Source: Laetmonice hystrix (taxonomy: Eukaryota). From it: 64,000 nucleotides of DNA. The number at the start of each line of letters is the position of its first letter. The stretch's first letter is position 1. Where the stretch lies: positions 12,338,001 to 12,402,000 of the forward strand of contig OZ249439.1 in assembly GCA_965235115.1 (NCBI GenBank). Reading direction: 5' to 3'. Shown piece after piece: positions 1 through 23,539 of this stretch. A program made the position numbers and the translations under genes. The notes below the pieces were generated by a model. The model did no database searches and was not told the origin of the DNA. It saw only the letters and a program-made list of their open reading frames with translations.

Positions 1-101
1 TCCTCGCTGGGGCCACGCCCACTGTCCGTGTTCGAGCCATCACCGGAGTAAGCACTATCGGCATCAGGATCCTGTTTCAACATCTGCAGTAACTGGTGAA
101 C
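1..101 (-). CDS. Coding exon (truncated by window start), protocadherin-like cytoplasmic segment VHQLLQMLKQDPDADSAYSGDGSNTDSGRGPSE
   Basis: Acceptor tgtattgtacttgcAG at 102-103 (minus), 33 stop-free codons in phase 0, matching the phase-0 donor of exon 7393-7623. DSGRGPSE resembles the DSGxGxSE/D (CM1-like) motif of protocadherin tails. Exon is well supported; family assignment is recalled, roughly 0.5. Confidence 0.7.
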
Positions 102-408
102 CTGCAAGTACAATACAATCAAAGTCAAATTATGATAGAAATGATATCCACAGGTTCATCAGTGGTAGGAGTAAACAGAATATCCAGGGGCCAGTGTTCA
201 GTCAACAGCCGCTCTATATAAACAGCGGCGATAATCACCAAGTAAGTTTTTTAGGAAGACATTATTTTATCGTATGTCAACAGTTTCTCATTGCTGTAAA
301 ACATACTAATCGTTTAATTCGGGTGTGACTATCTCGTTATATCTAAGCCGGCTTTCTATCCTACTACTCGTCATATAAATGGATGAACATTATCCTTGTA
401 TTTAGGTT

Positions 409-518
409 TTCTCTACATACAGAATACATCTACTGTCCACACTTCTGTCATATGACAATACACTTCTCTACATACAGAATACATCTACTGTCCACACTTC
501 TGTCATATGACAATACAC
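409..518. repeat. 55-bp perfect tandem duplication
   Basis: ttctctacatacagaatacatctactgtccacacttctgtcatatgacaatacac x2; contains the palindrome TGTCATATGACA. Confidence 0.9.
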
Positions 519-3342
519 GTTAATACATACAGTTGTCTTTTTATCTTGCATAATTCAGACATTAAGACTGGCCTAATATTCTTTGCCTAAATCTTGCCGA
601 GTAATGTGAACTGAAAGATAAGCTCTCGGTTTCTGTTTATTGACACGTTATTCATTAAGGATTTCTTACCGACTGTCTCAGACCCTAATGTATAATTCTG
701 AGCGTGCTCAAACCAATGGAATAGTTATCTCTTTGCAAGTATGATTTCCTATCCGCATTAGACTAATGAATTCGAGTGAAGTTTCTCTCTGCACCGATAT
801 CTCTTGTGAATATAGTTTTTCCCCTTCAAAAATTGGTTATTCCAGATGGGTTATTTTTTATTCTTCGGTTGATGTTCCATACATGAGACTTATATGGTCC
901 ACACAAATGAACCATATACATGGAGCTGTGAAATAAACCATTCGCCAGGGGGCGCTGCCCGCCATCAATTAACATAATAACCTAACAATTCAATAACACG
1001 TCACAATCGGCTGCGCCCTGAGCGCCATAAACTAGCTGGGTATCCTTTGTGTCACATGTCCTCGGCGTTTCATTTGGCCAGCATTTACACAAAATCCCCA
1101 GCAGCATAATGTCACGTGAAGCAATTTACATGAGAGGTTTTCACATGGAGAAATCGCACACCGATTGAGGCCGACTCCACCCGACCCACTCTCCGACAGA
1201 CGACTTGTTTATCATTGGTCACCGACTGGCTGGTGGCATATGGTAAACCAGGAGAGATGGCCCGGGCGTGGGACAGACACCCTGCCCACCCAGACCGACA
1301 GGTGGCCCAGCCTTACCCCACACACCCCCACACCCGGTGTGGCCAGGCCCCCAGAGACTGCTACAACCGATCCAACCACACACAGTTTACACGTGTCACG
1401 CTGTCGACACAATTAAAACCACCAGACGAGCTTTAATCCCATATTGTTCCCCCGCTGAATTAGCCAGCCTGATTAAACATTAAAGCACGAGTTCCCAGAC
1501 CCCCCTACCTCCAGTCCCTACCCCAACATATCCCACAATGGATCTCTTTCAAACACCTCAATGTGCCCAGTCCACCGCATATTGCTACATTGAAAACCGC
1601 ACCTTATTTCATTAAATCAGAAAATTAATTAACAGATCTCCACTTGAATCAATTTGTTTGCAATTGCCCGATCCGTACGCGATTGGAGAAGACAACGCGG
1701 GCGAAAGTCTTTGTTTGTTGGGCCTTTTGATATGCCATCATTGAGAGCTGATGCAATTTTATCAGTCATTAAGCCATATTATATGTCATTACCTTAATTT
1801 GTAGGACAAGGGCTGGCTTAACAAGGCTACAATATGATTATGGGAATCATTCAGACTTTGTCGGAGTGCTCTTGATCCAATTTAAGCAACGTTTTCACAC
1901 AGGCCTTTGCTAAATCAAGTGTCTCTAATCATTTTAAACGAATGGAGTTCAGTGAGAAAAAAGATTTAAATTCTTGATGACTTCAGATAGTTACCAGAGG
2001 CATGTGAAGTATGAAAATTCTTCACAAGAAGAATGTTGTCCTTGCAAATTACATCTGTGTTGATGCGTCAAAATAAAGAAATCAAATGCAACTAATATCA
2101 ATCAGCTGTGAAGGAGTATTTTTGTGTACGTCCATAACGTCGATATGAGGTTAAGGTTATTTCACTCAGTAAACACCTGACTCATTCAGTGGTATTAATT
2201 CATCCCTGGCGTCGTGCTGGTTGACTGAGACCAGAGAATGAGAGTACCCCCCGGGGTGGACGACACAGATAACCCAGCTAACATCGTGTTAACTTATTCA
2301 CGTGACCGTCATTAATTAACTCTAATCCAATTGGACAGAAACTAATGTTTAACATTTGCAAATAATGACACTCAGACGAACCCGTACAGATCGCACTTTT
2401 GATCAGATGTTCCCACGACTGAATATTCATACCCACTATTACGTTATCCAGCCATACTTTCACCATTTTTCCTAACTGTTTTGTAGACTTGCATGACGGA
2501 TGCATTAAGTTCCGTCAAAATTTTCGCATCCATTTCATCACCCTTTGTCTGGGCGCCACCCACTTTGCTGGTACTCGTTGGGGTGAGCCCCCCTAACTGT
2601 GCCCGATAACCCCATTACAATACCCTACTGTCATTACAAGGGCCGACAAATTCACGACAACTTGGCAGCTCATTAGAATATCACGTTGGTCAACGTTATA
2701 GATGACAACCTCTTCGCTAATCTCTGCCCGCTGTTAATCTGGTTACCACGGGTACAATCAGCCCATCTGTCCAAGTGCCAAAACAATGACCGCCTACTCG
2801 CGTCAAACGGGCCACTTGTGAAAACTTTCCATCTGGGCTGGGGTCATTTACTTGCCGATCCGCTAAGAAAGATTACCTAAACTGACAAGCTGTGATCGTG
2901 GTGGAAGCCTCCTGGCTTAGAGTGGGCCAGGATCTATGGCTATCTCATTGTCTCTAGCTCTACCCCCGTCGGCTATCTTAGTGTGAAATCATTCAACTGT
3001 GTAAAAAAAAACCCAACGGGTCCGAGTGGTTCACAGGATTCTGGGCACAGGATGTCCGAGCTTTGTACCTGATTAAAGCTTTTGTTCTTTCTCTCTCACC
3101 AGTTCCTGAATGGGAAAAACTAGATAACCAAGTCAATCGATAATGATGACGGGGAGGGACCCTACAACCTGACAGAAACATCGCCAGCAGGAATCGTTTC
3201 ATTGAATACAAAACGTGAACCCAACTACCGCCAGGTTTCCTCCACGCAGCCAGGCCTAGACTTCTAACGTCAGGAGCGCCATCCTTCACGTGCATCACTC
3301 ACATCAATATAAGTCAGTCGTATCGGTAGACTTATGGAGCAG

Positions 3343-4083
3343 TCAGGATGAAACGACTGTTCGTATCCGTCAACGTCCGAGCTCTCCCAACGTCAGGACG
3401 GAACGACTGTTCGTATCCGTCAACGTCCGAGCTCTCCCAACGTCAGGATGGAACGACTGTTCGTATCCGTCAACGTCCGAGCTCTCCCAACGTCAGGACG
3501 GAACGACTGTTCGTATCCGTCAACGTCCGAGCTCTACCAACGTCAGGACGGAACGACTGTTCGTATCCGTCAACGTCCGAGCTCTACCAACGTCAGGAAC
3601 GACTGTTCGTATCCGTCAACGTCCGAGCTCTACCAACGTCAGGACGGAACGACTGTTCGTATCCGTCAACGTCCGAGCTCTACCAACGTCAGGACGGAAC
3701 GACTGTTCGTATCCGTCAACGTCCGAGCTCTACCAACGTCAGGACGGAACGACTGTTCGTATCCGTCAACGTCCGAGCTCTACCAACGTCAGGAACGACT
3801 GTTCGTATCCGTCAACGTCCGAGCTCTACCAACGTCAGGACGGAACGACTGTTCGTATCCGTCAACGTCCGAGCTCTACCAACGTCAGGACGGAACGACT
3901 GTTCGTATCCGTCAACGTCCGAGCTCTACCAACGTCAGGACGGAACGACTGTTCGTATCCGTCAACGTCCGAGCTCTACCAACGTCAGGACGGAACGACT
4001 GTTCGTATCCGTCAACGTCCGAGCTCTACCAACGGCAGGACGGAACGACTGTTCGTATCCGTCAACGTCCGAGCTCTACCAAC
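3343..4083. repeat. 50-bp minisatellite, ~15 copies
   Basis: Unit aggacggaacgactgttcgtatccgtcaacgtccgagctctaccaacgtc; some 46-bp units lack acgg. Confidence 0.95.
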
Positions 4084-5568
4084 CGATGCGGACATAGTAC
4101 ATCCAACCACAGGTCTGCTTGTATGAACAAGGTGCGATGTGCCACGCAAATCCTCTCAGTGGATAATCCTCTAGTTTGATCCTAGCCGCCGTTTGAGTGG
4201 GATTAATGACACTTCTGTTGTTTATGCCTGGATTAGAACGTGGCCAGATTTACCGTTTCATGCCTGACCTTGGCGAGTAGGCAGAAATATTACAAACGAG
4301 ATGAGTGTTCATTTTACATGACAGCCCACTTCCTATTGCGTGTTTTAACACAGTAAAGACTGCGCCACAATCAGCTTTCGGGCTGAAATTTATCAATGCT
4401 TAATGGCCCGCAAATTTATGAAACATCTATTTGCCTCGGGTCGGAAAAAGTGGGAAACTAGAATGAATTCCTTCCTTAACAACTGATGAAAAAACAATTT
4501 GAGGAGCATTCCTGCTGATTAATTGTGTGCTAAATTTGTTTTATTGGCCATTTGATGTATCATCGGTGTGCGAGAGTGGTGAACGCTGGTTGTAATGACG
4601 TGGTCTGGGGGTTATTGGTCCGGCACTGAGAGCAGCGGAGTAGGCTTGCATGTCATGGTCGGGGGTTCTTCACCAGTCACCCCCACCCGTCACACAGTGT
4701 GACGCCGCCCGGTTTATCTGGCAGTCTCCATGCGCGCTGCCCAGCCTCGTGTCCCAGGGCACTCCTCCAAGGGAGCACGCTACCAGGCAAAAACCAACGC
4801 CGCAAAATGGTGTGTGAGAAATCAATGGTCGCTTGGCGGATCACTTTCCTGTCGGTCTCAAACCACCAGCTACTGGTGCTGCCATCTATGTACCTGCCTT
4901 TATGACGTCACAACTAGACCAACCTCCAACCTCCTTGTGCATCTTTAATGCAGAAGTTATGAAGCTGCAGAGTCACATGACGCTATCATAATACATCCAG
5001 CCCGACCAAGACCTACAATAGCGACTGTAACTGATATGACCATCTCATCGCCAGGCCTTTGGCACGACTGGCCTTACCAATCTCGAGCCAATTTCCCCTT
5101 TTCCTCGATGGGGCCATAATGGGAGTTATTGGTCAGTTGGTTGTGTTCACAGCGCGTGGAAGAGGAGCTCAGCATGGCAAGGCGATCACTTGCAATGATC
5201 TGGTGGTGTCACTGTGTTAGCGTCACGCCTCAGGATCGGCCTGCAACCATTACTGTCCCAGGGGACGAATCGTATGGGGCTGACGGGGTGAGAGATCTTT
5301 TCTATCTGTCGCACCCAATCCAACAGTTCAAACCGGACAGGTTTGGAGAAACACCCTGACCGCCTACTGACGCCAACCTCCCCATGCTCCCACACCCCAC
5401 CCTTGTCACCTCTCCATACGACAGACTGACCCCAGCCACCATTATCACACACTGAGGGAGGGGAGGGGATGATGGGGGCAGAGGGGGGGGGTGTTGTCCA
5501 GCAACACAAACTTTGCAATGTGGTTCATACAGAGCGGAGTGAATTGAATGCGACCAGTATCGAGGTTA

Positions 5569-5836
5569 CGATAGTTACACACAGAACGGTCCCACTGTGT
5601 AGGACGCGATAGTTACACACAGAACGGTCCCACTGTGTAGGACGCGATAGTTACACACAGAACAGTCCCACTGTGTAGGACGCGATAGTTACACACAGAA
5701 CGGTCCCACTGTGTAGGACGCGATAGTTACACACAGAACAGTCCCACTGTGTAGGACGCGATAGTTACACACAGAACGGTCCCACTGTGTAGGACGCGAT
5801 AGTTACACACAGAACGGTCCCACTGTGTAGGACGCG
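5569..5836. repeat. 38-bp minisatellite, ~7 copies
   Basis: Unit gcgatagttacacacagaacggtcccactgtgtaggac. Confidence 0.95.
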
Positions 5837-5986
5837 TGGTCTGACCCAATAAATCATACAGATCCGAGAAGAGCCAGTGGGGGATTCAACCAAACAAAAC
5901 AGGTTAACTCGAGAACTGATAACGTTTACTATCCTGCTTTACCTAACTATAGAAACTCACTTTACGACCACACAGTGGACATGTGA

Positions 5987-6128
5987 TAAACTCTATACTC
6001 CTCATCTAAACTCTATACTCCTCATCTAAACTCTATACTCCTCATCTAAACTCTATACTCCTCATCTAAACTCTATACTCCTCATCTAAACTCTATACTC
6101 CTCATCTAAACTCTATACTCCTCATCTA
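5987..6128. repeat. 20-bp minisatellite, ~7 copies
   Basis: Unit taaactctatactcctcatc. Confidence 0.95.
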
Positions 6129-7392
6129 GTTAACTGTTACATCACTGTTTGCTACAAATACACATGTCTAATCTCACAATCATACAATCTCGTCTTTTTC
6201 TTCCTCTGAGACAAGGATGACATTTTCCTGTTTACCTTTCAACAACCATAAATCAACCACTTCACTACGGCTGGACAGAGACATGACAATAAATCCCGTT
6301 GAAGGTATGATACGCGAGTCAGCCAAATCCTCACGACTTCTTATGCCCATTTCTATATACTACTTATTATGGTACAGGGGCACCAGTTTGCGATCCAAAT
6401 ATATAGTCTGGCTGTCAACTGTTTTGTTAGATATATGAGCCGTTCAGACCTTAGCTTATTAAATGTTCCAATGTTATAGTCAACTAATTATTCTTTTGAT
6501 TGTTCCATGTACAATGGTCGGATCCGTGATACAGTTGGAAACATAGTACTGTTACATGATACTACTGTGCACAGAAACAGAACTGAACTTCTGACTCTAA
6601 CTAGGATTATTTTTACTATTACTTACGACTATTGCCTTTGATAATCTGACGCTTTGCATGAGGCAGTCCCAGCGCAACTTCAAATGGTGAATATCGTTCA
6701 AATAAAAATACTGAAAAATTATAGCTGTTTACTGTACTTCTAGCACACAAACAATCGACTGTTCCCTCTCCTTTGCTATTACCATTCTTTTTTGTAACAT
6801 GTTCTACCCGTTTACCGGGAGTATTCCTGAAACATAACCACCAACAACCAAAAATCACTGCACACTGCCATTGATTAAAGGTCAACCATCTCCTATAACT
6901 AACATTCCATTCGTCAGAGATCCGATTTTTACTAACAATCACACAATGAACCTGGTCTTGTTGGAATCAAGTCGAGGAAGGTCGACACTGAGGTTTATTC
7001 GTACCCAAATCTCTATTGGAGACCACCAGATAGGCAGCAATGCTGAAGATTGGCAATGAATGATTTCCCTTCCATCTATGCCAGTGCGGGAAAGCCTAGT
7101 GATATTACCAGGACGGCCGTTTTGTCTGCATTACCCACCGATAGAGTTTTCGTGGTATTGATCAGAGTAGCCAACTAGGTCATGTGCTGTCAGCTGACAA
7201 ACTACGTGCCGCCAACATGTGCGAATCTGGTCGGTATTCCTATCACGTTTATTCTATGGTTCACACAGCCCATATAAAACACTGGCAGAATTAATGTGAA
7301 TCTAGCTGTGTGAATGTGCCTACATTAAGTAATCTGGTAACCCTCTTTCACCAGCAGATGCTGCTGAGAAGTGTGAAGAAAACATGCCGTAC

Positions 7393-7623
7393 CTCAAGTT
7401 CTCGTTGTGTAAGTGCCCAGGGTTGACCACGTGGGTTGGCTTGTGGGCTGGGCTGGTGCAGCGCCCCTGGTGGCGGTGGGGGCGGGGTGGCGGGTAACTG
7501 GTGGGGGCTACCGACCCCTGTGTGGCCCGGGGTGGTTGGTCGTACCCCCGGGGGAGGTGGGGGTGGAGGTGGGGGTGGGGATGCCGTGGTGTTGTTCAGC
7601 ATGGAGCTGCAGGCTTGTGGATG
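7393..7623 (-). CDS. 231-bp phase 0-0 coding exon, proline-rich (HPQACSSMLNNTTAS-P10-GVRPTT...ATP6GALHQPSPQANPRGQPWALTQRELE), same gene as exon 1-101
   Basis: Acceptor tttttatcctattgcAG|CAT and donor GAG|GTacgg. 77 codons with no stop. Polyproline uses mixed CCA/CCC/CCT/CCG codons. Splicing to 1-101 gives a continuous frame. Confidence 0.8.
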
Positions 7624-10600
7624 CTGCAATAGGATAAAAATACACATCCAATCACTTAATGCCAGTACAGACCTCCCACACAATATTGGCAAAGATATTC
7701 ACGACATCAACATTAAAGAAAGTTAGGGGGAAAAACAATATAAAAACATCGGTTGATCCATCGTAGCGAGTGGCCTATCATTCAGTTTACAAAAAACACT
7801 GATCATCTAATGTACGATGCTATCGTGAATATCTAAAACTCCCTCATACCATGATCTGGATTGTTGCCCCCATCAAGTTAGTTACCCGAAGGTTCCTTCA
7901 GGTTTCGAGAAGACTATTCAGGACCTCACAAACTGAGCTTCATCCAATATCAATTACATAGAGTCGAATTGTCTACACAGACAATAACACACCAAGTAAA
8001 TTAATGATTTCTTTAACAATACTTAGCAATGATAGTGATTCCATAGAATGCTTTAAAAAATAGCAAGTATTTATAACTCCTATCAAGTAATGTGATTTAC
8101 TGAGAACGCGATGTCTACATTCATCCTACACTGCATGTCCATAATTGCTGCAACCATGATATCAAATAAAAGGACCTAATATAGTTGCCATGCCTTTATT
8201 TGTACTTTGGTCAGCGAGAGATAACCTATACAAGAAGAAATCGTAGCATTATCAAGATGTTGAGAAAGTACTGATATTATGCGGGTGGCCTTATTGCCTT
8301 CATACCGAAAAGGTCATGTGCCCTCAGGTGAACTAAGTTCCACGTTTTGTTCGGTCCGAGTTATTGACTGTAAACAACGTTACTGGCACTCCCGTGTCAA
8401 CCCTCGCAATATTTCCGCCGATATTCATTGAAGAAACAGCAAAACGAAGATGGGCACCATTTATTGGTCCAGTCTGTACCGTAATTTGGTACAATCAGAT
8501 TCACCAGCAGAAAACCAACGTAATGTAGTCCTTTTAAAAGTCTTCCAAATGTCTTGTATGAGATATAAAGGTCGGGGAGTTTCAAGTGAGCTCAGCGCTG
8601 GTTTCCCTTTGTTAGTATATACACATGCTTCAAGATGACGACTGGTGAGTACCAGTCGTTGGTGGCAAAGTTTATTCACAATATCAACTTCTTTCTGGCT
8701 GTAGCGGATGTTCCAAAGAAATGTCTCAGTTCATTGAGGCTGTGTCCGGGAGCCCTTCGGGGTCATGGGGTGGGGGTCGTGGCCTCCTCAGACTTTAATG
8801 GTGCCCGCTCCTGTTTAAGGCGATGTCTTTGCCTGCTTTCCTTATTCACACATCTTCAAGGCAGTTTGACTACTTTGTATGGGGAGGTAAAAGCGATGGG
8901 AGTACAGTGTTCTCTGTCCATCAACAGAGAACCTTTTTCCTTTCAGCAGGCCCCGTGTCCTTACGGCGACACGTCCTGGCGATATTTCCTGTTCTAAGAG
9001 GGGGCTTGAGTCGGGCTGTGAAACACAATGGTACATGGACTCATCACATGCGGCTGTGTGGTCGTTAGCATGGTGGAAATCCCGGTGGTCATCAATTACT
9101 AGCTGTCTTACATTGTTGGTAGCCGCCGTCGCCACACGCAGCAATATTCCTTACGACTCCAGACCGACATGCGATCTCTTAATCATTCTCCAGTGCCGGC
9201 GAGTGGCGACACCAATCGGTCAGCTTGCCTTCACGTGTCACAGTGGGAGAGTTGATCACCCTGAATGGTAACTCTCTCTCTAGACTTCCACCAGACTTCG
9301 ACAGCACCTGAAGCTCTTTCACGTCGGCTGCTACTTGGAATTCTAAGGGCTCAAAATTTGCAAGTCTGCGATATCCCGTCATGATTGGAATTAACTGCAG
9401 TGACTATGGCCCCACACTGTGGGCGTGATGTCCCTAACATCACTGTGGGTGTGCTTGCATAGCCAAGAGGGGCATAGCCAAGAATCTACTACCCCAGACA
9501 TTTCACAACGTCTTAAAACTGAATTAGTCTGGACCAGAGTGTGAGCGAGGGAATCATGGCCTCAGTAGAATGTGGGCAGTGTGGTAGCACTGAGTGAGCA
9601 TGGTCAGCTTGCCAACTGACTCTGTGTGTATCATGTGACGTGCTGTATGTTATTCCCTGTATCCCTTCTCCTGAAATATCATACCACAGTATCAACATTC
9701 CTGGCATATTGTAGGAAAACAGATGTACCAAATGGAGGAGTGCAATGCTCAAGTAGTAGCAGTGCTGCTGTATGATACACAACAGCACCTAAACATCCAA
9801 GGCATTGAAATATAAGCAAGAGAAAAAACCCTGACGACTGCCATTGGCAATGGTGCCCACTTTCGCTGTCAGAAACTTAATTTATTCCATTAAGATTTCA
9901 AAAACGACCATGAGACAGCTTGGTTTTTTAAACCCTATCTGTACGTAAGCATTTCATCACCGTATTTTTAAGCTTCTGATTCGTTTATCACATCTTGAGA
10001 CAACATTGGTGTGAGTCAGTTCGATGGGATGATGCATTATACTCAATGTATTATAATCAGTCCAAAGTGATATTTATGCATAACTCGGAACGCCCCGGAG
10101 CCACCATGTATAAATACATAAAATATTACGGTAGTTTTACATTCAGCAACAGACAGTATCAACAGAAACCGCCGTTAAATCGGGCCAAGTAATTGTCACA
10201 CCGAGGCCAATCTTTGAAAGGCCTAGTATATTGTATGCTACTCGATTCCTGTTGTGAACGCGAGCTGACCATCACCTGGCGGGCCTTTCAACCTTATCCC
10301 GTGACGCAATACGACCGTAATCACTGAGTAACAAAACACCAACCGACAATCATGCGGCAAACTTTACAAACTGGCAAAGTGTTGATGACAACCACTTTGA
10401 CGGTAACCTTAGATAAGATATGGGTGAACGCCACCTCCCGCACGCACCTGATGGAAGCTGCCATACTCTGAGAGCTAGTCGCAGTAATTGACTCTCACCC
10501 ACAACCTGGTAAATTTGAGCAGCTCTCAGCAATGGGCCTCTGTCCGGCCGTTAGTGGCCTTCTGTAATGAGAGACTCGGCGGCCTTCGTATGTACCTGTT

Positions 10601-12050
10601 TACACCATCTAATAGTCGGTTTCGTTCTCAGCCTGTTGACGCCTTGTTTGAAGGAGTTGCCCCTCATTACGTAACCCGAGATGAGAATTCAAGACGGGAT
10701 TACCAGCTGAGGTAAGACGGATTCACTCGTCACGTGGGACAGACAGCCCTAGTTCAGACATGATCCGTTAAAAGCTTTGAGCTTTGCATATCGGAGAGAA
10801 TGCGATTCACTGCTTGTTGCGATAGCTCCAGTCTATCGGTTACACCGAACGACTTTAAATAATTCTACGGCCTGTGGTCGATCGCTATAGATAATAACCA
10901 TCCTTTCCAATCCAGACAACTTCCGAAAGATCTTTTCCGTCTCTAAACTTACGCATAGTGTTTAGAAAGCTTCTCATGTTATTAATATTCAAATAATATG
11001 CATCTGTCTGGATTGGCGCAAGTGTGTTTTGCTGCAGACGGCGTGCCTTGTCCTTACGACATGTTGCGGCCACCAAACATCAGTGAAGATCACGCAGTCA
11101 GGAACGCATGACCTTGGAACATGAACGACATCTACAGAGTCAAGCCTCACTCAGTACTATAGATAACACCCTGCCAGTTGCAGGTGTCCTAACGGTGATG
11201 GCTCCCCCTATGCACCCACCTATAGTATACACCATGGGGACAAGTTTCTTCCAGTCCAAGAAATTCTGCCACAGAATTGTTTTTCACAGAACCCAAGAGA
11301 AGATCGGGGATTCTGGAAAAAAGAGGGCGTGTCCAAAGGGAAGAAACTTGAGTACAAGAAGGATCACCGAGAGATTGCATTTTATTGTAAGGGGAAAAAA
11401 ATCAAATTGACAGGGTTCCCTCTCCGGTCTGTGGTGGAGCCTCATGACACTGTAGATTATAACTGAACCTCGTTCCGTTCACAACATGAGCCCACTGAGC
11501 GCGGGACCACACATTGTCGGTTCGTCTCTGGTCCTCCAGGGGAGACCCGTACCCGGCCCGCACATGGCCTGCAGGTCCAACACCTCCAGTGTTTACCCAC
11601 CACCACCACTGATAAATCAAGGCTGACAGCAAGAAAATTGGACAGCCACTCAGAGCCTGCCTTGAATTTCCTTGTCACGGGAAATAAAGTAGTTCTGACG
11701 TTCACCTGTTTCAGTAATAGGTCCCCTGATATGGACTCGGCTTGGCACGAGTCCCTGTAGATACACGGTTCTAACGTTTCAGCTTTGCATACATACGAGG
11801 TCATATGTAGGGCTTTTGTTCCCACAGCTGACAACCTGCTAGGTGTTTCTTTATAAACCACGAAGGTCCGGAAATTCAACTTTTCATGAAACTTTTGTTT
11901 AAAATCACTGACCGGTAGATGTCCTAACGGTTACCTTGCTGCCAGTCCTCGAAATCATCTTTAATCATTCGATTATGATGACATTGTAGATTATAACTGA
12001 ACACGTCATGTTGTAAACCTATAGCATGTGCTTACAGGTAATCCGTAACA

Positions 12051-12398
12051 TTTGACTATTCTGACTGGTAATCCATGCCCTATTACTTGACCATTCTGAC
12101 TGGTAATCCATGCCCTAACATTTGACCATTCTGACTGGTAATCCGTGCCCTAACATTTGACCATTCTGACTGGTAATCCATGCCCTATTACTTGACCATT
12201 CTGACTGGTAATCCATGTCCTATCACTTGACCATTCTGACTGGTAATCCATGCCCTAATATGTGACCATTCTGACTGGTAATCCATGCCCTATTACTTGA
12301 CCATTCTGACTGGTAATCCATGCCCTATTACTTGACCATTCTGACTGGTAATCCATGCCCTATTACTTGACCATTCTGACTGGTAATCTGTGCCCTAA
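12051..12398. repeat. 35-bp minisatellite, ~10 copies
   Basis: Unit cttgaccattctgactggtaatccatgccctatta with variants. Confidence 0.95.
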
Positions 12399-13449
12399 AC
12401 CTATCATAACGACGTTTATACCTGCATTAACACGGAAAATTCCGAGAGATATGCTTAGGGTAACCGTAGAAATAACTACAACCTTCCGCCCCCGATTCTA
12501 GACATTCTATCACTCTGTTTAGTCATAGGCACAGGTTGGAGATCCACTTTTAAAACCCACGTCTGTATTCTGTCAGGAAACAACATACAATTAGAATTTT
12601 GCTATAGTTAAGGTCCAGTTTTTATACTCATTACCCAAAGTCTCTTCTTCATTAAATTCATGGGGTTATAGACCTCGCGTAGTGTCTTAATACTACAACC
12701 TTTGTAAGGCGCAAGCCCCGATGCCCTAGTCTAAACCAGCCCATTAAAGAAGACGCCCATTCCCCGAATAAACGGTTACGTTGTCAGTTCTGCTTGATTT
12801 CATACCGGAAGTTCAACTCTACTTTAGCCTTTCTGTGGGTCATTCGTTGGTCATGCATGCAAAATAAACCGGCAGGACCCAAAAAAATCATCCGATTCTA
12901 AATGGGCCCAGCTTTGGAAGAGCCACAAAAGGTCATCAGCATTATACTGGGGTCCCGTCCGCCATCAGTACCGTTGGGTTCACAAGTCTATTCTTACGCT
13001 ACATGGGGTTCAGCCGCAATCTGGGCTGACAAAATCAAACCGTTGTAAGGGATGCATGCTACAATGCCTTCAGTCTGCCTCACAATCCATAGAGGCGACC
13101 TTCGAGGTCAGTTATTGGCATTTCTGGTGGCAGGAGCCTGGGGTGCTGGCACCCTGAAACCATCACGGCCGACCAGCCAACACTGCCGGGCCTGGGCCTG
13201 GTAAAAAGACAATCGTTCGCCTGCCACATACCCTTAAAAATCAGGCCTCCTCGCAGCATTCCCCCATTCCGTGATTTACCCTTTTAGGCTTTGAACCTCA
13301 CCTCAGAGACGAATTTCACCTTGAATTTTTATTTTATGTAGAACTGAATGTCTCCAGCACAGGCATCCTGCGAGCAGTCGGACTTCCTTGTCCGCTTATC
13401 TGGAGAATCTGATGAATTGTACCAGTGGTGTCTCTTATCAGATCCATGC

Positions 13450-14450
13450 CAGAGGACATGTCAAGATACCATCAGCCTCAGGAGACAATTCAGTAGGACG
13501 TCTTCTCTATGAATTGTATTTCTGAACACGGGCATTCATCAAATTGATGGTGCTCACTTGCTTAGCGTAGATTAAGAACCATATGTCCTTTTTTGGCCTA
13601 TCATCATGGGATTTGGGGATTGGTAATAGGTTCTGGGCCTTTGCCGTTCTGGATTCTTTGCACTCTTCCAGGAACATGTAATCATGGTAATTATGTCATG
13701 GGATTGCTGTTCCTCTGATCCAGTTCTAGCCCCTTATCTTGTGCACCCAACGTTTGAATCAGACATCATGGACATTGACCTATTAATTATACTCTCATCT
13801 CCCAGATATTCAATTCGGCCTGGCTTTATCTGCGCTGCAGGTTGGCATCTGTCCTATGTATTACATGGTAATAAAGCTAGCAGCAGCAAGCCACCGCCGG
13901 GGTAGCAGTGAGTGCCACGTTTCTTGGTCGGAATGCCGTGTGGATAATGCAGCGGTATGAAATAAGACCAGGGCTACGCCCTTGCATGTCCGACGGCATG
14001 CTGCTCCTTGGATATGGTTCAAAAATAAAATATGACTTCGATAATTTAAGAGCTGTTCCTATCGGTGCAATATGACAACTCCAACAAAAACCGAGTCCAC
14101 ATTGTAACCGTTGGGATTTTATGACCCTAGCCCAATTAATTCCGAGAGTGGACTTTGACCGTGGCTAGATTAATACAGAAACTGTGTGAATCCTTTGGGA
14201 GGACATAAGACGAGAGAGGGGAGTGGAGCATGCCATGGCGGAAGTAGTGGAGGAGAATCTGAAGGTTCGTGAAGGGTCTGATGAAGGGAGCCCTCTCTCC
14301 TGTCTGTCTCACATGTGTTCGCGCCCGGAGATGGAGAGAGATTCTAGACACTAATCTGCAAGGCCAACGCTAACCCTCGGCGCTTCCACCCCAAATGCAC
14401 ATATAAAAAGCCTCCTGATCTTTGCATAATTCTATCTAATGCTGCCACAT
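13450..14450 (-). mobile_element. Probable decayed non-LTR retrotransposon (CR1/L2-like ORF2 endonuclease and linker remnant)
   Basis: Frameshifted minus-strand fragments in the expected order: DRIMQRSGGFLYV (cf. DR..GGGV.IYV), LESLSI, ELIGLG-x-N (cf. LIVLGDFN), TLSKxAPS (cf. LDKHAP). Heavily degenerate. Confidence 0.35.
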
Positions 14451-15668
14451 GAATAATCTATGGAAGTGCATTTCTGCAGGTGTACGGGACTTAAATGTGC
14501 TGCTGTCCCCGGAAAAAGGTCTCCTGGGAGACTGCGCAAGGGAGGTTTCTGGTTATCTTGGTGTCACAGCAAATACTCCACCAAGCTCTCAACCCAGACT
14601 TTCATCGTTTGCTTGTCTTTGTGTCTTAAAGATAAGCTGACCACTGAAGGATGGCAATCTGCAATTTTATCGTATAAAAGAAAAGGATGCAACATTTTCT
14701 TTAAAATCTGGCGGCAGCCGAGACACTAATGCCAGTAGTGTAAGTGTTAATTCCTCACAAATAATCTATTCAGCTTGCGCACCTGGGACAAAGCGAGTTC
14801 CCTTTGATTATACACCTTATACAAATCCTAAGTAGATGGCTTGGCAAAAAAAACTATGTACAAAAATAAAAAAATAAATCTATGACGATGGTAAGTATTG
14901 ATTTGAATAAAGATTTTGCACTGGGGACGCACTTCCTTTATTGAAGATTACAAGGCAGGAAATGGTAGAATGCACTTTCTAACCCCAGCTCTGCATTCAG
15001 CCTTTTGACGGAAGAGTCCTGCTGTACCTAACACCTAGTTCTCCCATCACCCTCTCAAAAATCATTACATGTCAACTAGATCAGATGTTACAGAACTTAG
15101 GATATTTTTAATAAAATCAACAAAATACTCCCCCCTGTAACCTTGAGGAAAGTGTGTCGTGATATTCTCTCAATACACATAGTTTTCCCTAGAGGCAATG
15201 GCATGCAGCCAAACTTGATTTAACTGGAAACGAGTCCGTTAAACGTTCCGTGTTTTCTTTGGCTCAATGATAATGTCCTTAAATCAGCTAACGACCGGCC
15301 GATTATTCCTACAGTTGGGCAAATCCACGATAAAATACTATGTAGCGGGACTGTTAGGGGTTGCCTTTACCGGGGAGTCTCACTCCCTGCTACAAACCAC
15401 GGCTTTAATTACACTGCTCTACTAAATCAACAACGGAGAACACACTGACAATGGTCGTTTAAAACAATGAGGGACAGAGATGGCCAGACGGACAGACAGA
15501 CAAACAGGGGAGGTCGATATGATACGTACTGAAACAACGCCTGTCAGATCTAAAGTTGCTGATAAATAACCGGAATGACTAACTGCATGGTGGAGGGTGA
15601 CTTATATAACATACGTATATGTTACACTTATACTACACGTATATTGGTAGAATTATGATTTTATGAGA

Positions 15669-15906
15669 GTAGAATTATGATTTTACCCAGGACAACGCGT
15701 AGTGTTGTAGGGAATAGATAAGAAGGAGAGCGCATGCGCGGGAAGACGGCAGACTTGAACCAAGTGCGAGTGAAAGAAGCAAAGGATCTCCCTTTTTACG
15801 TGACTAACCTTATCTAAAAGGTAACCGCACAAAATTCTAAAGGGCGGGGCAGGGCATCTATTCCCTACAACACCACGTGTTGTCCTCGGTAAAATCATAA
15901 TTCTAC
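15669..15906. mobile_element. MITE-like element, 238 bp, with 50-bp terminal inverted repeats
   Basis: 15669-15718 gtagaattatgattttacccaggacaacgcgtagtgttgtagggaataga versus reverse complement of 15857-15906: 47/50 identical. No clear TSD; superfamily not assigned. Confidence 0.8.
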
Positions 15907-16119
15907 TTCAACTTTTACCAAGGTACGTCTTGTATAATTGTAACATTTTACCTCGGACAACACTTGAGTGTTCATCGACGAGATGTTTAGAGCTTCTTTA
16001 CATCTTTACCTTCCGGACATATTTCAGGACTTCATCATGTTATTATGAAGACCTTTATTAATTCTGTCTTCTGTCTCCATTACATTAGTTCATCAAACCG
16101 TCGCTCATTCAACAATCTC

Positions 16120-16600
16120 TCCGCCACATCATTATGGCCTTCCTCAATGTCCTTTCTTAATCAAACTAAATACGATACCTTATTCACATCCCCAAATGAC
16201 GACTAATTTAATCAATCTACAAACCAACGGGTGTTGTCCAACCCAAGAGCCCTCAAATACCGGCAGTGTAACAGCTAGGACTGATCTGGCAGGGTTTAAG
16301 GCTCCGCAACCTTATCCTATCACTATAAAAACCATCGTGATCGAGTTCCTTTTCTTCCCCGTCCAGTTCCAAATGTCCCTGGCGATCAGATTACATTGTT
16401 GGGATCCAACCTCCCCCCGCCCTATATGTTGTACATCCGTCAACAATGTATTGTCCGTCAGTCTACCCTAACATGCACACCTTCTTCCGGGCACAAACTT
16501 TGTAAGCCAAACAATATGGCTGTCAACGCAAGGACGTTGGTATGCTCTTGTCTCCTGCCGTCTTCCGATCCATGCGTGATCAAAAGACATGTCATGTAGA
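16120..16600 (-). mobile_element. Decayed DIRS1-type tyrosine-recombinase retrotransposon fragment (RNase H plus YR N-terminus)
   Basis: Minus strand reads EHTNVLALTAILFGLQSLC...HVR, then LTDNT...GSQQCNLIARDIWNW (DIRS RNase H motifs), then GALNPARSVL...VGQHPLVCRLIK..WDVNKV (DIRS YR N-terminal motifs), with frameshifts and stops. Confidence 0.75.
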
Positions 16601-16866
16601 AAGCCGAGGTACGTTTGATGTGAACAGGTCACAAAGGGTGTTATTACCTGGCAACATTTATCAGATATGTGGGGGAGGATTATTGACAGCTGGTGCCCCT
16701 CAGCCTACCCTCACACGTCAACACCCACCCTGGTGAGGAACGCTGATATGTAAACACCTGTACAGGTAAATCGGTGGGATGAGGACCTAGCACTGTTCGG
16801 GCACTGTGTATCTGGGGCCTTATAGGCCCGACATTGGCAGGAGCGGAGATTGTATGCAGAGGGCCT

Positions 16867-18610
16867 TGGCTGAGGGCGGGGGCCTGGTACTCAGGACCTT
16901 AGAACTGACATTGGCTGGGGGCGGTTGGTTGGGGGCGGGGGCCTGGTACTCAGGACCTTAGAACTGACATTGGCTGGGGGCGGGGGCCGTGTACTCAGGA
17001 CCTTAGAACTGACATTGGCTGGGGGCGGGGGCCGTGTACTCAGAACCTTAGAACTGACATTGGCTGGGGGCGGGGGCCGTGTACTCAGGACCTTAAAACT
17101 GACATTGGCTGGGAACGGGGGCCTGGTACTCAGGACCTTAGAACTGACATTGGCTGGGGGCGGGGGTCGGGGGCCGTGTACTCAGGACCTTAGAACTGAC
17201 ATTGGCTGGGGGCGGTGGCCCGTGTACTCAGGACCTTAGAACTGGCATTGGCTGGGGGCGGGGGCCCGTGTACTCAGGACCTTAGAACTGACATTGGCTG
17301 GGTGCGGGGGCCGTGTACTCAGGACCTTAGAACTGGCATTGGCTGGGGGCGGGGGCCGTGTACTCAGGACCTTAGAACTGGCATTGGCTGGGGCCGTGTA
17401 CTCAGGACCTTAGAACTGACATTGGCTGGGTGCGGGGGCCGTGTACTCAGGACCTTAGAACTGACATTGGCTGGGGGCGGGGGCCGTGTTCTCAGGGCCT
17501 TAGAACTGACACTGACTGGGGTCGGGGGCCGTGTACTCAGAACCTTAGAACTGACATTGGCTGGGGGCGGGGGCCGTGTACTCAGGACCTTAGAACTGAC
17601 ACTGACTGGGGTCGGGGGCCGTGTACTCAGAACCTTAGAACTGACATTGGCTGGGGGCGGGGGCCGTGTACTCAGGACCTTAGAACTGGCATTGGCTGGG
17701 GGCGGGGGCCGTGTACTCAGGACCTTAGAACTGACATTGGCTGGGGGCGGGGCCGTGTACTCAGGACCTTAGAACTGACACTGACTAGGGGCGGGGGTCG
17801 TGGGCCGTGTACTCAGGACCTTAGAACTGACACTGACTAGGGGCGGGGGTCGTGGGCCGTGTACTCAGGACCTTAGAACTGACATTGGCTGGGGGCGGGG
17901 GCCGTGTACTCAGGACCTTAGAACTGGCATTGGCTGGGGGCGGGGGTCGGGGGCCGTGTACTCAGGACCTTAGAACTGACATTGGCTGGGGGCGGTGGCC
18001 CGTGTACTCAGGACCTTAGAACTGGCATTGGCTGGGGGCGGGGGCCGTGTACTCAGGGCCTTAGAACTGACATTGACTGGGGGTGGGGGCCGTGTACTAA
18101 GGGCCTTAGAACTGACATTGGCTGGGGGCGGGGGCTGTGTACTCAGGACCCTAGAACTGACAATGGCTGGGGGCGGGGGCCATGTACTCAGGACCTTAGA
18201 GCCGACACTGATTAGGGGCGGGGGTCGGGGGTCGGGGGCCGTGTACTTAGGACCTTAGAACTGACATTGGCTGGGGGTGGGGGCCGTGTACTCAGGACCT
18301 TAGAACTGACATTGGCTGGGGGCGGGGGCCGTGTACTAAGGGCTTTAGAACTGACATTGGCTGGGGGCGGGGGCCGTGTACTCAGGACCTTAGAACTGAC
18401 ACTGACTAGGGGCGGGGGTCGGGGGCCGTGTACTCAGGACTTTAGAACTGACATTGACTGGGGGTGGGGGCCGTGACCTTAGAACTGACATTGGCTGGGG
18501 CGGGGGCTGTGTACTCAGGACCTTAGAACTGACATTGGCTGGGGGTGGGGGCCGTGTACTCAGGACCTTAGAACTGACATTGGCTGGGGGCGGGGGCCGT
18601 GTACTCAGGG
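16867..18610. repeat. G-rich ~45-bp minisatellite, ~38 copies
   Basis: Unit gggggcgggggccgtgtactcaggaccttagaactgacattggct with indel variants. Confidence 0.95.
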
Positions 18611-21421
18611 CATAAGGTCTAACATTGCCCCGGTTCCTGTACATGGACATGTACAAAAGAATCCAAGGTTTCCGGTTGTTCTTTACATACTGCATAATTA
18701 TGTCGGAACAGTTGTATCTGATTTTAAATCCTCGCATATTGGTTTTTATCTGTTTTGACAGCTCCATATTCAATCTGTCACTGAAAGCGTTGTCGAGACG
18801 GACAAAACTTTTTTTGGAAGGTGAGCCAAGACAGGTGAGAAACGGGTAGCCTACAGCGAGTTTTGTGCATCTCGCCTTACTATTCAGTGTCACCGACTCC
18901 ATTTTGATGACATCCGTTACCACAAACCAGAAACCCTGACACTTTATTACAATCAGTATTCTGAAAGACTGTTCTTCAAAATGACAACCGGTTACGGTGA
19001 CGGTCCGATGTCGGGTCAATCCTAGTCGCAGTGATACACTTCTTGCCAAGCCTCATATAGCCTTATTCTGAGAATCAGTAATAGTACCCTCCGGTGTCTC
19101 CATAAACGTAACCATGGTAACATATACTCTTTGCCATTGATAAAAACGATATTTGCAAGTGGAGTACAATGGATCACATTGAAACGCTTCCACTGCCTCA
19201 AATTGATACAATACACAAAGTTCGATCACGACTTAAGTCGTACTCAGCACTTAACACTGCATCTGCCATGTCTCCAAGTCCTTGCACTGCTTCAGGACAG
19301 AACAAAGGCAATAAACAGTGCCACAACCCAACTCTTGTCGAGTGTTATATAATCAGCCCCAGCTCAGATGAGTTTCACGAGCGACGTCTGAAATCTCTTG
19401 AATGCGGTCGGTTGGCTGGTTGTGACGTAAAGTATGAGTCCCATCAGTCATTGAAAGTTGAGCTCGTTTGGGCCGATCCTGGTGGTGGTGGTGGTTCAAG
19501 GTTATTTTATGATACAGGAGAAAGGTGAAGGTAAGCGAGGAGCACCATCAGCAGGGTGGACATGGCAGGCGGCGATAGATGTATTTATGTATGGCGTTCC
19601 ATCTTTGTAACTAGGGAAGCAGTCACCATGGAGATGTATCATGGCCTCTACTGCTGACAGTATATCCCCTCTGTAAGATTGATTACGTGGTGAGCCACCT
19701 ATGGTCGATGTCAGCCAAGTTGGAGTAGCGCTCTAGAAGACAGCCCCCGACCCACTCTATGGAATAGGCTGCGCTGCATCATTCCTTTAATGAAATCCTT
19801 CCTTAATTCAATTCCTGTTCCTTTCTGCTACCCTTGTTATGATAATCCAATAGAATCTCAAGATGATCCAGGGCCAGGCCTCGTTATTTGTTCCGTGTCG
19901 AGGTATTAAAGTGAAATGTTGTAGTTCAGTCTCCAGCATTACCGAAATGAATGCCAACACAGAGCGTCAATATTACCCATTAAATGATAAAAAATCACTT
20001 GAATGTTACGATTGCCTGCAAACCTCTGTTAGAATGATGGTGATTTCTACTGCAAGCAATCAGCCATTTAATTAATTAAAACTGAATAGCACAGTATGGC
20101 CATCTATTGTCACCCATCTCATCTGAATACGTAACCCATTACTACAAGTGAAGCAGGTCTCAAACTCTGACGGCGACATTCATCACTACACCACTTTTAT
20201 TTGGATTCCAATTAATAACCTTAACTTCTAATAATAAGGCCAATAACATTAGCATTGTCATGCTGCCGCCTGGCAGACTGTGGAATTCCTGGTGATAATC
20301 TCTCCAAGGTGCTTTGCTCAGTCTTTGTACATTGTTTGAGAGGGAGAAAAATCTGTCAAAAGTGACGTCGATCATTGCTCTGGGTGACGTTTACTGTTTC
20401 CTAAATCATCCGATCGGAGATAGTTAAATAAGATCTGTGATATTACGATTTGAAAAGGAAGAAAATGTGGAAAGATAGAGCATGCACTCTTGATAAATGT
20501 CATTGTGACTTAAAGATAGACAATGCTGCAAGAACATGTGATTTGGTGACAATGTGTGTTTGCGATAACACGAAACAGATGCATGTAGTGTTGAAGTATT
20601 AGCATATGATCTCCAATAATCGTTCTAATAGAGACTGACTCACGGTGCGCCACAAGCCCGCAAACCGCACCCACGTAACAGGTGCCCCTGTATTTGGGCG
20701 ATTCAACCCGACAACCAACAATAGCTTGGAGAAATCGGCTAAGACCCATCTTGAATCTTTAATGTAGCATTGCGACGCTTGAAATACTAGTAGTTTGAGA
20801 GAAAGCTAGGCTAATTACAAGAAATCAGGAACATTGGTGGAATGACACATGAAAATGCCATTCATATGGGTCCATCTGTATGCTACAGAAGGAACCTGAA
20901 ATCATGATAAACTTGCTGGGTGTTTTTCTAAATCAAATCGTAAGTAATATAAGTAAGAACTGTACGATATCTTGAATAACGACAGTAGGGCTTGTTTCAA
21001 AAAGACTCTTTGGACAGAATACCGTGCCAGAATTCAAATCCATCACATTAAAACAGCAATACTTGATTGTTATATGCACTGTCGTGCTGCGACTCCTTTT
21101 TCCATTGCATTAAAAACCACTGCTGACAGTAAAACAAAAATAACCCAAACGTTCACACACCTTGTAGGAAAAAAAATAACAGCAACAGAATGGATTTTTT
21201 CATTTACCGTTCTTTCTTACTGAGGAAAACGTAAATCAGGAAGTACATGCCATCCCAATTTCTATATACATGTATATTCAATCATGCTGGGCCGTTTTGG
21301 CAGGTGTCATCAGGAGGATGTACAGCACTGATTTCAGAAAAATTCAGTTTGAATTCAACCCTTGTATTTCAACGCTGTCACATGTTCCCAGTGCTGTGGT
21401 TAAATATGTCGTTCGTCTTAC

Positions 21422-21528
21422 CAAAAACATGTGCTGCAGCTGCTCGGCAAGGACAGTAAAAATGGAGAACTTTTTTATGAATCCAGTCTCGTCTGATGGA
21501 TCGGATCTGCCCCTGCCCCTGTCTCCGT
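21422..21528 (-). CDS. Possible 107-bp exon (DGDRGRGRSDPSDETGFIKKFSIFTVLAEQLQHMFL)
   Basis: Acceptor gtattgtttgcAG, donor TTG|GTAAGA, open frame ending in phase 0 compatible with exon 7623. No recognisable motif; could be chance. Confidence 0.2.
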
Positions 21529-23324
21529 CTGCAAACAATACTTGGGAATGGACATTATTAAAATCTTCACTCCAGGCATCTTTTTCTGGATCTTATATTA
21601 ACGTCCATATCCAGCCAGGTCGTCTGAACTTTCATTCCTTTGCAACATGCTCTTTCTGCAGTTTCCGATCCGAAAGGCTTTCCTGATCTTTCACTTGCAC
21701 ATCACAAATAAATGATAGATTATCACGCACAAAGCGGGCGAGTCCCGCTGTCAGTCAGAGTGTTGGATTGAATCAATGTGTACATTTATTATAAAAGCTG
21801 TCCCTGTAGTCTACAAAGTTTTCAATTATTTTGCCCACTTTGCCCACTTTTTTCGCTGAGAGGGCAGAATCCCTTGCATATCTAAAAGCAAAATTAGTAG
21901 GCCTATCATCAAGGGTCTACGTAATGTATGTCTTCCTAATGCTGTTTAATTCCTTGCCAAGCCATACAGTGTGCGTTGATGGAATGGAAACGTTGCACAA
22001 AGTGTATAAAATCAAAAAATACCAAACTTATAACGTGTTCACTCCATCTAAGTGTGGATTTACTGTCAACTACATCAAACTCCCAATGGCAGTCTCCACT
22101 TGGTGTATGTTTAAAACGTCAAGCTGGGGTGTAAACAATACTACCGGTAATGTGTAAACTGCTGTGGGTTTATGCGTGGCTAGCTCCAGCCACTAGAAAC
22201 AAATCGCCTGGGGCTTGGAGTCGGACTGCAAGTGCTCCCATTATCGGTATGATCGGTCAACTAAAGGCCCGATAAGGGAGTCAATGACCAGTGTAAATGA
22301 TGACCGAGTCGCGACGTGTCCAGCCCGGGGCTGGGGGCGCTGGGAGCCGGCCAGTGGTTGCCGGTGAAGGAGGTGAGTGGCTGGTAATGACTGGCCGCAT
22401 GGAGTACAGCCTAACAACACGGCACAGGACGACGACACCCCACGGCGGCCCATAAACAGGCCGCCGCCGTCACCGCCGCCGACTCAGGGGCGACACCGGC
22501 AACGGGCCAGCCTGGCCCCCACAATGACACTCTTTATTGGCCTTTTTATCTGCCAAGTTAAGGTCTTTGAGCCAAAACAATGATAGTTTGGGCCTGATTA
22601 CAACCGCCTTCAGGACAAGCCACTTGGCAAAGGCATCTGTCTGCCAATGAATGGCCATAATAGATCTCAGTGCGGCGTATTGATGGAAACAAAATTATCT
22701 GTAGCCAACCCTTCTCGTGAAGACATTCATCATAATGACCTATTCTAGATCGTGACTGATGTCAACCTCGCCAATCAATGCCCGCCCCTCGTGCACACCT
22801 CAACCACTATATAGCCAGGGTGAAATTACAACCCCTAATTTACTAGTCAAGACGTGTAGAAAACAAGCTGTCTATACCGTAAATGACAATCCGTCAATAT
22901 ATATTGCAGTCGTTAACTCTACAGTAGTCGGATTATTTATGCAACAAGGAAAGCCAGTGCAATTACTCCAATTTGGTAGGGAATAAAATCATGAATTATC
23001 CAAAGAAACTAAATGCCAGTCAAGTGGAATTGTATGGGGAGAAGCTTTAGGGGGCCACTAAATAAACAGATCTGTATGAGAAAAGGCCCATGATGAGATA
23101 AACATCCTGGGGTCAGATTGGTGACTCTACTTATCTGTGTTGTCTGTCTCGGGTGAACCATGTTCTATCAGGTCTATAGACATTGGAGAATTACTAAATC
23201 CATGATCCATTTCGATGTCTACGTTTCAAAAACACATGTCTAAATAGAATCGGAGTGGAGTGGTTTGCTTTCAGCGAGTGTTTGTTAATGATATTTAGGC
23301 AGGAGGTTGGACGCAGGGCTGCCA

Positions 23325-23478
23325 CGCCGTACATCGCCCGTGAAACACACAATTGGTCGAAAGTAAAGATATCCCTGACCTAATCCCTCACTCCGGCCCC
23401 AAAACATATCCATATCCTATCCCTGACCGTAAACCCCAACCCCTGTCCAAAAATATTGTGGGGAAGTTAGCATGGGGG
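23325..23478 (+). repeat. Interspersed repeat fragment, copy 1 (CCCTAA-like motifs)
   Basis: Aligns with 56135-56315: gtacatcgccc, ggtcgaa-gtaaagat, ccctgacc, aaaacatatcc, ccaaaaat, aagtta..atggggg. Confidence 0.7.
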
Positions 23479-23539
23479 AACAACCTCCCACGCATTGCGC
23501 GTGTCGTTGAGCAGCGGGAGCCGTGTGGCACAGCGACTG

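Follow-up and report, generated by a model that had tools for sequence, protein, structure and literature searches.

A four-exon protocadherin gene with a conserved cytoplasmic tail in Laetmonice hystrix

In protocadherins, one long exon codes for the whole ectodomain and the transmembrane (TM) helix (PMC10084454). In mouse Pcdh10, exon 1 also carries 138 cytoplasmic residues, the tail motifs are encoded by small exons further downstream, and an extended exon 1 gives rise to a short isoform (PMC9040349). Seven extracellular cadherin (EC) repeats are present in vertebrate delta-0 and delta-1 protocadherins (PMC7339444), and the third conserved motif (CM3) of the delta-1 tail is the PP1-alpha-binding, RVxF-type motif RRVTF; no CM1-3 have been reported in the octopus Ov-PCDHs (PMC6339937). 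Vertebrate Pcdh10/17/18b/19 and the alpha-protocadherins are linked to the WAVE complex (PMC7339444) through the WAVE-regulatory-complex interacting sequence (WIRS), the consensus of which is Phi-x-T/S-F-x-x (PMC8209697). A cytoplasmic Asp/Ser-rich (DSR) domain of ~25 residues has been described in Xenopus PAPC and other delta-2 protocadherins; in PAPC, phosphorylation by GSK3 at S-x-x-x-S within this domain licenses ubiquitination by beta-TrCP and controls membrane localisation (PMC4291225). Here we analyse a 64,000-nucleotide stretch of the Laetmonice hystrix genome (contig OZ249439.1, here C4:12338001-12402000; hereafter the window), which contains the second coding exon, and all but the last 41 nt of the third, of a non-clustered protocadherin gene with four exons that encodes a type I membrane protein.

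The gene spans ~85 kb of the minus strand (C4:12404730-12319745; Table 1), and because exon 1 lies beyond the window and exon 4 downstream of it, the window consists almost wholly of introns 1 and 2. An earlier sequence-only reading of the window had predicted a gene in which small cytoplasmic exons come after a large one for the ectodomain, and this is the organization that was found, in the form of exon 1 and exons 2-4. The cadherin-repeat exon that the same reading expected upstream is present: a genome scan with PF00028 detected five cadherin repeats (C4:12402409-12403974, minus strand) within a 956-amino-acid open frame, and the open frame of exon 1 covers 951 codons of the minus strand (C4:12404745-12401890; L003 1890-4745). 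Its donor, CTCGAG^gtaagg (L003 2007/2006; carets mark splice junctions), is in phase 0 and thus fits the phase-0 acceptor at position 7623 (positions without a contig name are those of the window). Exon 1 encodes a signal peptide, the EC repeats, a TM helix and ~110 cytoplasmic residues. Exon 4, which follows an intron 3 of 17,595 nt, has a strongly polypyrimidine acceptor (tcccttctgtctccag^GG), continues in phase 1 and ends with a TAA stop. The spliced coding sequence (2,724 + 231 + 142 + 620 = 3,717 nt) encodes 1,238 amino acids and has only one stop codon, at its end; the six splice sites of the gene are all canonical.

The two exons located in the window are confirmed to be real. Their splice sites and frames were re-read directly, with the same outcome as originally proposed, namely two minus-strand exons with canonical GT/AG sites that join in phase 0, and the peptide given at that time exactly matches the re-made translations of both exons. 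The acceptor of exon 2, tttttatcctattgcag^CATCCACAAGCC (...ttgcag^CATCCACAAGCC on the minus strand), places the first exon base at 7623, and its donor, GAACTTGAG^gtacgg, places the last one at 7393. The first base of exon 3, at 101, follows the acceptor gtacttgcag^GTTCACCAG; this exon extends 41 nt past the window start, to a donor at C4:12337960 (...CATACAG^gtcggt). In the list of open reading frames (ORFs), exon 2 is covered by an unspliced ORF (7348-7692, 114 aa) and the 1-101 portion of exon 3 is not listed, as had been noticed before. The product of exon 2 has conserved ends, N-terminal (H/N/T)PQACSSML and C-terminal PWALTQRELE, that flank a variable, proline-rich middle with runs of 10 and 7 Pro (7460-7590). 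The product of exon 3 leads from VHQLLQMLK through an Asp/Ser-rich stretch to SNTDSGRGPSEEGE.

Comparison with a sister species indicates that both exons are translated. A contig of this species (ENA contig_356, locus L016) is collinear with the region and encodes P0001, a protein 92% identical to the exon 1 product. The contig has both exons with unchanged dinucleotides at their acceptors and donors, and intron 2 is collinear, with blocks that are 72-79% identical. In exon 3, 24 of the 47 codons are identical, 20 differ synonymously and 3 non-synonymously, whereas the 65 alignable codons of exon 2 include 15 synonymous and 10 non-synonymous changes together with three indels, of 15, 12 and 6 nt, none of which shifts the frame. 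This pattern of codon changes and in-frame indels is the signature of translation in exactly the frame originally proposed. The Pro runs of exon 2 are lineage-specific low-complexity expansions that also occur in the sister species, where their lengths have changed without a shift of frame.

The exons could be real and conserved, and the locus nevertheless silent or a recently dead copy that makes no protein, a scenario for which the many paralogues in the family leave room, as does the lack of any RNA run of this organism on record. We consider this very improbable given the intact 3,717-nt coding sequence with its full set of canonical splice sites, the purifying selection evident in exon 3 (20 synonymous against 3 non-synonymous changes) and in the in-frame indels of exon 2, and the close similarity of exon 1 to P0001.

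The closest named relative of exon 1 is Pcd11x of Platynereis dumerilii (UniProt A0A2H5BFB8; P0003, 1,241 aa; 56% identity); further matches are annelid proteins of Ridgeia, Paralvinella and Capitella. The tail of Pcd11x reads ...RSWPSTIDHKTLE TPQACSSML ... PPWPLTQRELE VHQLLQMLK DQDADSAYSGDGSNTDSGRGPSEEGE ... SGSYVVDPQDLCQEIDDLFFRDMVV, to be compared with ...RSWPSTIDHRTLE^HPQACSSML ... QPWALTQRELE^VHQLLQMLKQDPDADSAYSGDGSNTDSGRGPSEEGE ... SGSYVVDPNDLCEEIDELFFRDLVV in the L. hystrix product. Both Pcd11x and P0020, a protein labelled 'protocadherin delta 1' by JGI, contain all four exon segments in the same order with nothing gained or lost at the predicted junctions, the common pattern being ...STID(H/T)xxx(E/Q)^xPQACSSML...PWxLTQRELE^VHQLLQMLK...DSGRGPSEEGE...SYVVDPxxLCxEI(D/N)xxFFxDxxV. 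P0020 is uninterrupted on a 5.8-kb JGI contig and a 3.8-kb Logan contig, and since it is encoded without introns on such short contigs, it represents transcript-level sequence. The L. hystrix protein and Pcd11x are nearly equal in length, their tail motifs are in identical order, the same residues flank the three splice junctions, the first 37 residues of exon 3 are 92% identical and the C-terminus SGSYVVDPxDLCxEIDxLFFRDxVV is common to both; Pcd11x differs in that it belongs to a different annelid lineage and its equivalent of the exon 2 middle lacks the long poly-Pro runs. The gene is the counterpart of Pcd11x, as an orthologue or co-orthologue, and this genome contains at least 13 relatives.

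Beyond these close relatives, the tail defines a broader group. It comprises ~420 residues, of which exons 2-4 encode everything after the ~110 contributed by exon 1. In an exhaustive search of 1.84 billion representatives, a tail profile built on alignment A2 matched 203, mostly single-exon fragments. Seven of the ten matches that were looked up carry names and come from Lingula ('protocadherin-1'), Solemya, Helobdella, Owenia, Plakobranchus, Paralvinella and Capitella. As the named matches are from annelids, molluscs or brachiopods, conservation of the module extends across lophotrochozoan phyla, and we refer to the group defined by this profile, informally, as the lophotrochozoan Pcd11x-like protocadherins. 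Five motifs occur in the tail in a fixed order, namely xPQAxSSxL, PWxLxQxExE-xHxLLxxLK, SNxDSG(R/K)GxSE, Phi-x-T-F and the C-terminal VDPxxLxxEIDxxFF; all five are present in L. hystrix and align with P0003, P0020, P0175 and P0250. The 'protocadherin-1' of Lingula anatina (XP_013413109; P0175) has NPQAxSSxL, PWxLSQKEKE-AQELLDILK, SNTDSGRGHSEE and the C-terminal VDPNQLCLDIDQMFFQDMVV, although it is far more diverged (tail E 2e-9), and according to the profile the same module is carried by unnamed proteins of Owenia, Helobdella, Solemya and Capitella. Some relatives have lost part of the tail, such as P0091 of Capitella, which lacks the C-terminal helix.

AlphaFold2 applied to A2 predicts a mostly disordered tail (mean pLDDT 52.6) with two helices only. 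The first, QRELEVHQLLQMLKDQDA (QRELE^VHQLLQMLK; block pLDDT 76-90), straddles the junction of exons 2 and 3, so that the joined sequence would form one structural element; the second, PQDLCQEIDDLFF (block pLDDT ~81), lies near the C-terminus. Between the two helices is an Asp/Ser-rich stretch that ends in SNTDSGRGxSEE and includes an SEE site as well as the S-x-x-x-S spacing, which is seen in SGDGS and SNTDS. This region, DSAYSGDGSNTDSGRGPSEE, is similar to PAPC's DSR domain, having ~25 conserved D/S-rich residues with the S-x-x-x-S spacing, a likeness of composition and spacing only. Exon 4 contributes a conserved Phi-x-T-F-x-P motif and the C-terminal helix VDPxxLCxEIDxLFF with a hydrophobic end, -(M/L)VV; the conserved form of this end, -(M/L)(V/I/L)V, could act as a class II PDZ ligand. 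The hexamer M-R-T-F-A-P of exon 4 fits the WIRS consensus, a motif also found in the tails of the vertebrate delta-2 protocadherins Pcdh10/17/18b/19, and 29 of the 42 family representatives match the regular expression [FMWYIL]x[TS]F at the aligned column, compared with a chance expectation that we roughly estimate at under 1% per sequence.

The gene belongs firmly to the protocadherins: its exon plan and EC repeats, the structures nearest to it and the absence of a catenin-binding domain all say so. Exon 1 conforms to the rule of one exon for ectodomain and TM helix, and it also includes the first stretch of the tail, as in vertebrate delta-protocadherins such as mouse Pcdh10 (~110-138 cytoplasmic residues); also as in these, small exons further downstream encode the conserved motifs of the tail. 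Pfam finds PF00028 in seven stretches of its product (E 2e-111), PF08266 (Cadherin_2) at residues 33-115 and, over residues 673-763, an EC7-like domain; the EC repeats number seven. The nearest solved structures are protocadherin ectodomains, among them PCDH10 EC1-6 (aligned to residues 33-674), gamma-B4 and PCDH18/19/17. No classical cadherin cytoplasmic family is found among the Pfam matches of this tail or of the orthologue tails, even at E<=5. A search with the joined peptide of the two exons, the check put forward in the sequence-only reading, yields full-length protocadherins (Pcd11x, the JGI 'protocadherin delta 1' and Lingula 'protocadherin-1') and no other family.

The exon plan, one large ectodomain exon and small 3' exons, is shared with the vertebrate clustered protocadherins, and three paralogues lie within 310 kb, so the exons in the window might be imagined as constant-region exons that serve an array of variable ectodomain exons. 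The genomic context makes this very improbable. A tblastn search with the spliced protein over C4:12238001-12508000 identified only the four exons of the gene and one convergent paralogue on the plus strand; the two ectodomain exons in these 270 kb include a single one on the minus strand (exon 1), and neither the 56-kb intron 1 nor the 100 kb upstream of exon 1 contains another. Furthermore, a six-frame genome search with the exon 3 peptide detected 13 copies, all on C4, and each of the 13 has a ~950-aa cadherin ORF of its own on the same strand, 8-64 kb upstream. This one-to-one pairing is the arrangement of a non-clustered gene, not that of a shared constant region, and the adjacent paralogue, being convergent, is on the opposite strand. 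The gene accordingly stands alone. A paralogous copy that is 76% identical to window bases 1-107 is located at a distance of 214 kb on the opposite strand; the similarity ends at the acceptor AG, which makes exon 3 more than a chance pattern. The possibility that the proline-rich peptide is derived from a different family (formin, WASP/WAVE or an Ig receptor) and resembles protocadherins by accident is negligible and is ruled out by the orthologue alignments: the two Pro runs are reminiscent of formin FH1 or WASP segments and neither exon peptide has a Pfam match, but these long runs are lineage-specific and missing from the Platynereis, P0020 and Lingula relatives, and the conserved ends of exon 2 together with exon 3 are parts of full-length proteins with cadherin ectodomains.

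The protein may be envisaged as an adhesion receptor with a disordered tail that would couple cell contact to actin remodelling and be subject to phosphorylation-controlled turnover. The ectodomain would mediate calcium-dependent homophilic contact as in other protocadherins, whereas the tail would function as a string of short docking motifs. Among these, the WIRS-like Phi-x-T-F motif might bind the WAVE-regulatory complex and thereby link adhesion to actin remodelling, and the Asp/Ser-rich stretch might direct the phosphorylation-controlled turnover of the receptor. For the explanation as a whole, a four-exon protocadherin gene with a conserved tail anatomy and this adhesion and docking mechanism, we estimate a probability of roughly 0.88.

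Several observations weigh against parts of this explanation. No Pfam family covers the tail, the two exon peptides match nothing at E<=10, and a profile search of PDB with the tail is likewise empty at E<=10. The WIRS and DSR assignments are motif-level suggestions, and a WIRS-consensus match in HSV-1 gE has been shown to be non-functional (PMC8209697). PF08374 ('Protocadherin') scores 16.9-21.3 bits, compared with a 26.3-bit cut-off, on the TM-proximal part. No vertebrate protein was seen among the 150 tail matches listed, only ten of which were looked up by name, so that a line of descent between the tail motifs and vertebrate CM1/CM2, in either direction, is unproven. The GHSDxCW motif that the sequence-only reading had predicted downstream is missing from the gene and from every relative compared. 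The EC1-4 region scores 247-274 bits against delta-2 structures, 215-242 against clustered ones and 198-206 against delta-1 PCDH1. Finally, the three sequencing runs that include the locus (from one sample) are genomic DNA and none is RNA; they are recognized as DNA because the contigs over 5500-9500 span intron and exon alike, without joints or loose ends.

The assignment to the delta type, also part of the earlier claim, fares less well than that to an invertebrate protocadherin tail: the latter is supported, whereas the delta-type or CM2 label is unproven. The delta-type label comes from the architecture (seven EC repeats, non-clustered, exon plan) and from the names chosen by other annotators. 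Three annotation sources name relatives of the gene after delta-1 genes, but the EC1-4 scores given above provide no backing from ectodomain similarity for the delta-1 label. Delta-2 protocadherins have six EC repeats, in contrast to the seven found here. Vertebrate delta-1 proteins (PCDH1/7/9/11X) have RRVTF where L. hystrix has MRTF; the site aligned with CM3, TSMRTFAPNY, does not fit [RK]x(0,1)[VI]x[FW], and only P0091 of Capitella (HKLVTF) does. Unlike the tails of vertebrate delta-protocadherins, this tail has no significant Pfam match to PF08374 or PF16492 and no GHSDxCW; the whole-tail Pfam scans gave only sub-threshold, TM-driven matches. An ESM Atlas feature search with the tail returned no usable match, and word-indexed searches with residues 917-1020 of P0003 and 950-1020 of the Owenia protein P0250 retrieved the query and one relative only, vertebrate proteins being beyond the reach of these searches. 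The literal motif DSGKGDS, considered as a possible delta-2 motif, led to no protocadherin paper when the literature was searched for it, and no use is made of it here.

The gene is a biologically ordinary member of the lophotrochozoan protocadherin repertoire, and the only mildly new element is a conserved tail module outside the family libraries, with a WIRS-like site. It is conceivable, although we regard it as rather unlikely, that the module encoded by exons 2-4 and conserved over annelids, molluscs and brachiopods is the ancestral bilaterian protocadherin signalling tail, composed of the junction-spanning helix, the DSGRG acidic Ser-rich switch, the Phi-x-T-F docking site of the WAVE-complex type and the C-terminal helix, of which the WIRS and DSR of vertebrate delta-2 proteins, and perhaps the delta-1 RRVTF, would be diverged remnants; RRVTF and Phi-x-T-F share the ..TF core and the same relative position. 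In any case, the module provides a handle on whether invertebrate protocadherins signal to actin in the manner of vertebrate delta-2 and alpha protocadherins. The analysis also fixes the gene model where an ORF- or window-based reading fragments it, the tail exons being 56 kb and 64 kb away from the only large exon, and where gene predictors cut the sister-species copy (P0001) short at an exon 1 read-through. Moreover, the almost wholly intronic nature of the window bears on any reading of repeats or motif excesses inside it.

Table 1. Positions of the exons and introns of the gene, of minisatellite arrays in the window and of paralogues on C4
Feature	Location	Strand	Description
Exon 1	C4:12404730-12402007 (ends at window-equivalent 64007)	minus	2,724 nt, 908 codons; ends 7 nt past window end
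Exon 1 read-through	window 63890..64000, on to C4:12402006	minus	38 codons past donor; stop 63890-63892
Intron 1	window 7624..64000, to window-equivalent 64006	minus	56,383 nt
Exon 2 ('exon A')	window 7393..7623	minus	coding, 231 nt = 77 codons; phase 0/0; splice sites read directly
Intron 2	window 102..7392	minus	7,291 nt; GT...AG
Exon 3 ('exon B')	window 1..101; whole exon C4:12338101-12337960	minus	142 nt; ends in phase 1
Exon 4 (last)	C4:12320364-12319745	minus	620 nt; tblastn with orthologue tails
Minisatellite arrays	window 3342-4083, 5569-5836		both in intron 2
Minisatellite arrays	window 12052-12397, 16925-18609, 24626-26279		
Minisatellite arrays	window 29441-30000, 39624-41067, 41631-42561, 50133-50626, 60256-61801		
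Convergent paralogue	C4:12247117-12279015	plus	ectodomain 12247117-12249630; own exon-3-like exon at 12278932
Third paralogue	C4:12094478-12124517	plus	own exon-2-like exon ending AWALAQKELE^gtaatt at ~12118520

Two kinds of isoforms can be envisaged. Retention of intron 1 would possibly yield a short isoform that lacks the conserved tail motifs, and as in vertebrate delta-protocadherins, this could occur by extension of exon 1, here by 38 codons; the gene predictions of related species (P0001, P0006) end inside such read-throughs. Exon 2, as a phase-0/0 cassette, is inferred to be skippable without a frameshift. P0010 (1,142 aa, from a JGI contig of transcript length) passes directly from the end of exon 1 to VHQLL and lacks an equivalent of exon 2, which would fit either an optional cassette or the loss of exon 2 in that paralogue.

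In intron 1, no cadherin ORF is present in the ORF list and no further coding match was obtained by tblastn. Neither tRNAs nor Rfam families were detected in the window. The window introns include at least eleven minisatellite arrays with periods of 26-72 bp, up to 37 copies and 85-98% matches, and these arrays are the source of the majority of the long 'ORFs' that the program listed. The tblastn matches of paralogues at 16914-17764, considered as potential exons, were rejected because they are translations of a minisatellite.

Over 5500-9500, contigs from the DNA runs of the same sample differ from one another by ~28 single-base differences and 4 small indels, all of them intronic; none of these differences falls inside exon 2, an absence that is statistically meaningless given its 231 nt. 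One of them, T>G at 7630, falls in the polypyrimidine tract of the exon 2 acceptor. The contigs from the DNA runs break at 7547-7589, inside exon 2.

The ectodomain exon of the convergent paralogue is 56% identical to exon 1, and ~40 kb separate its exon-3-like exon from the stop of the gene. The PF00028 scan identified ~25 single-exon cadherin ORFs (~900-1,170 aa), nearly all of them on C4 (40.6 Mb), where they are spread out between 1.0 and 27.4 Mb and form no single tandem array; 13 have a VHQLL...DSGRG exon downstream. The cadherin matches on contigs C1, C7, C13 and C30 belong to ORFs of different sizes.

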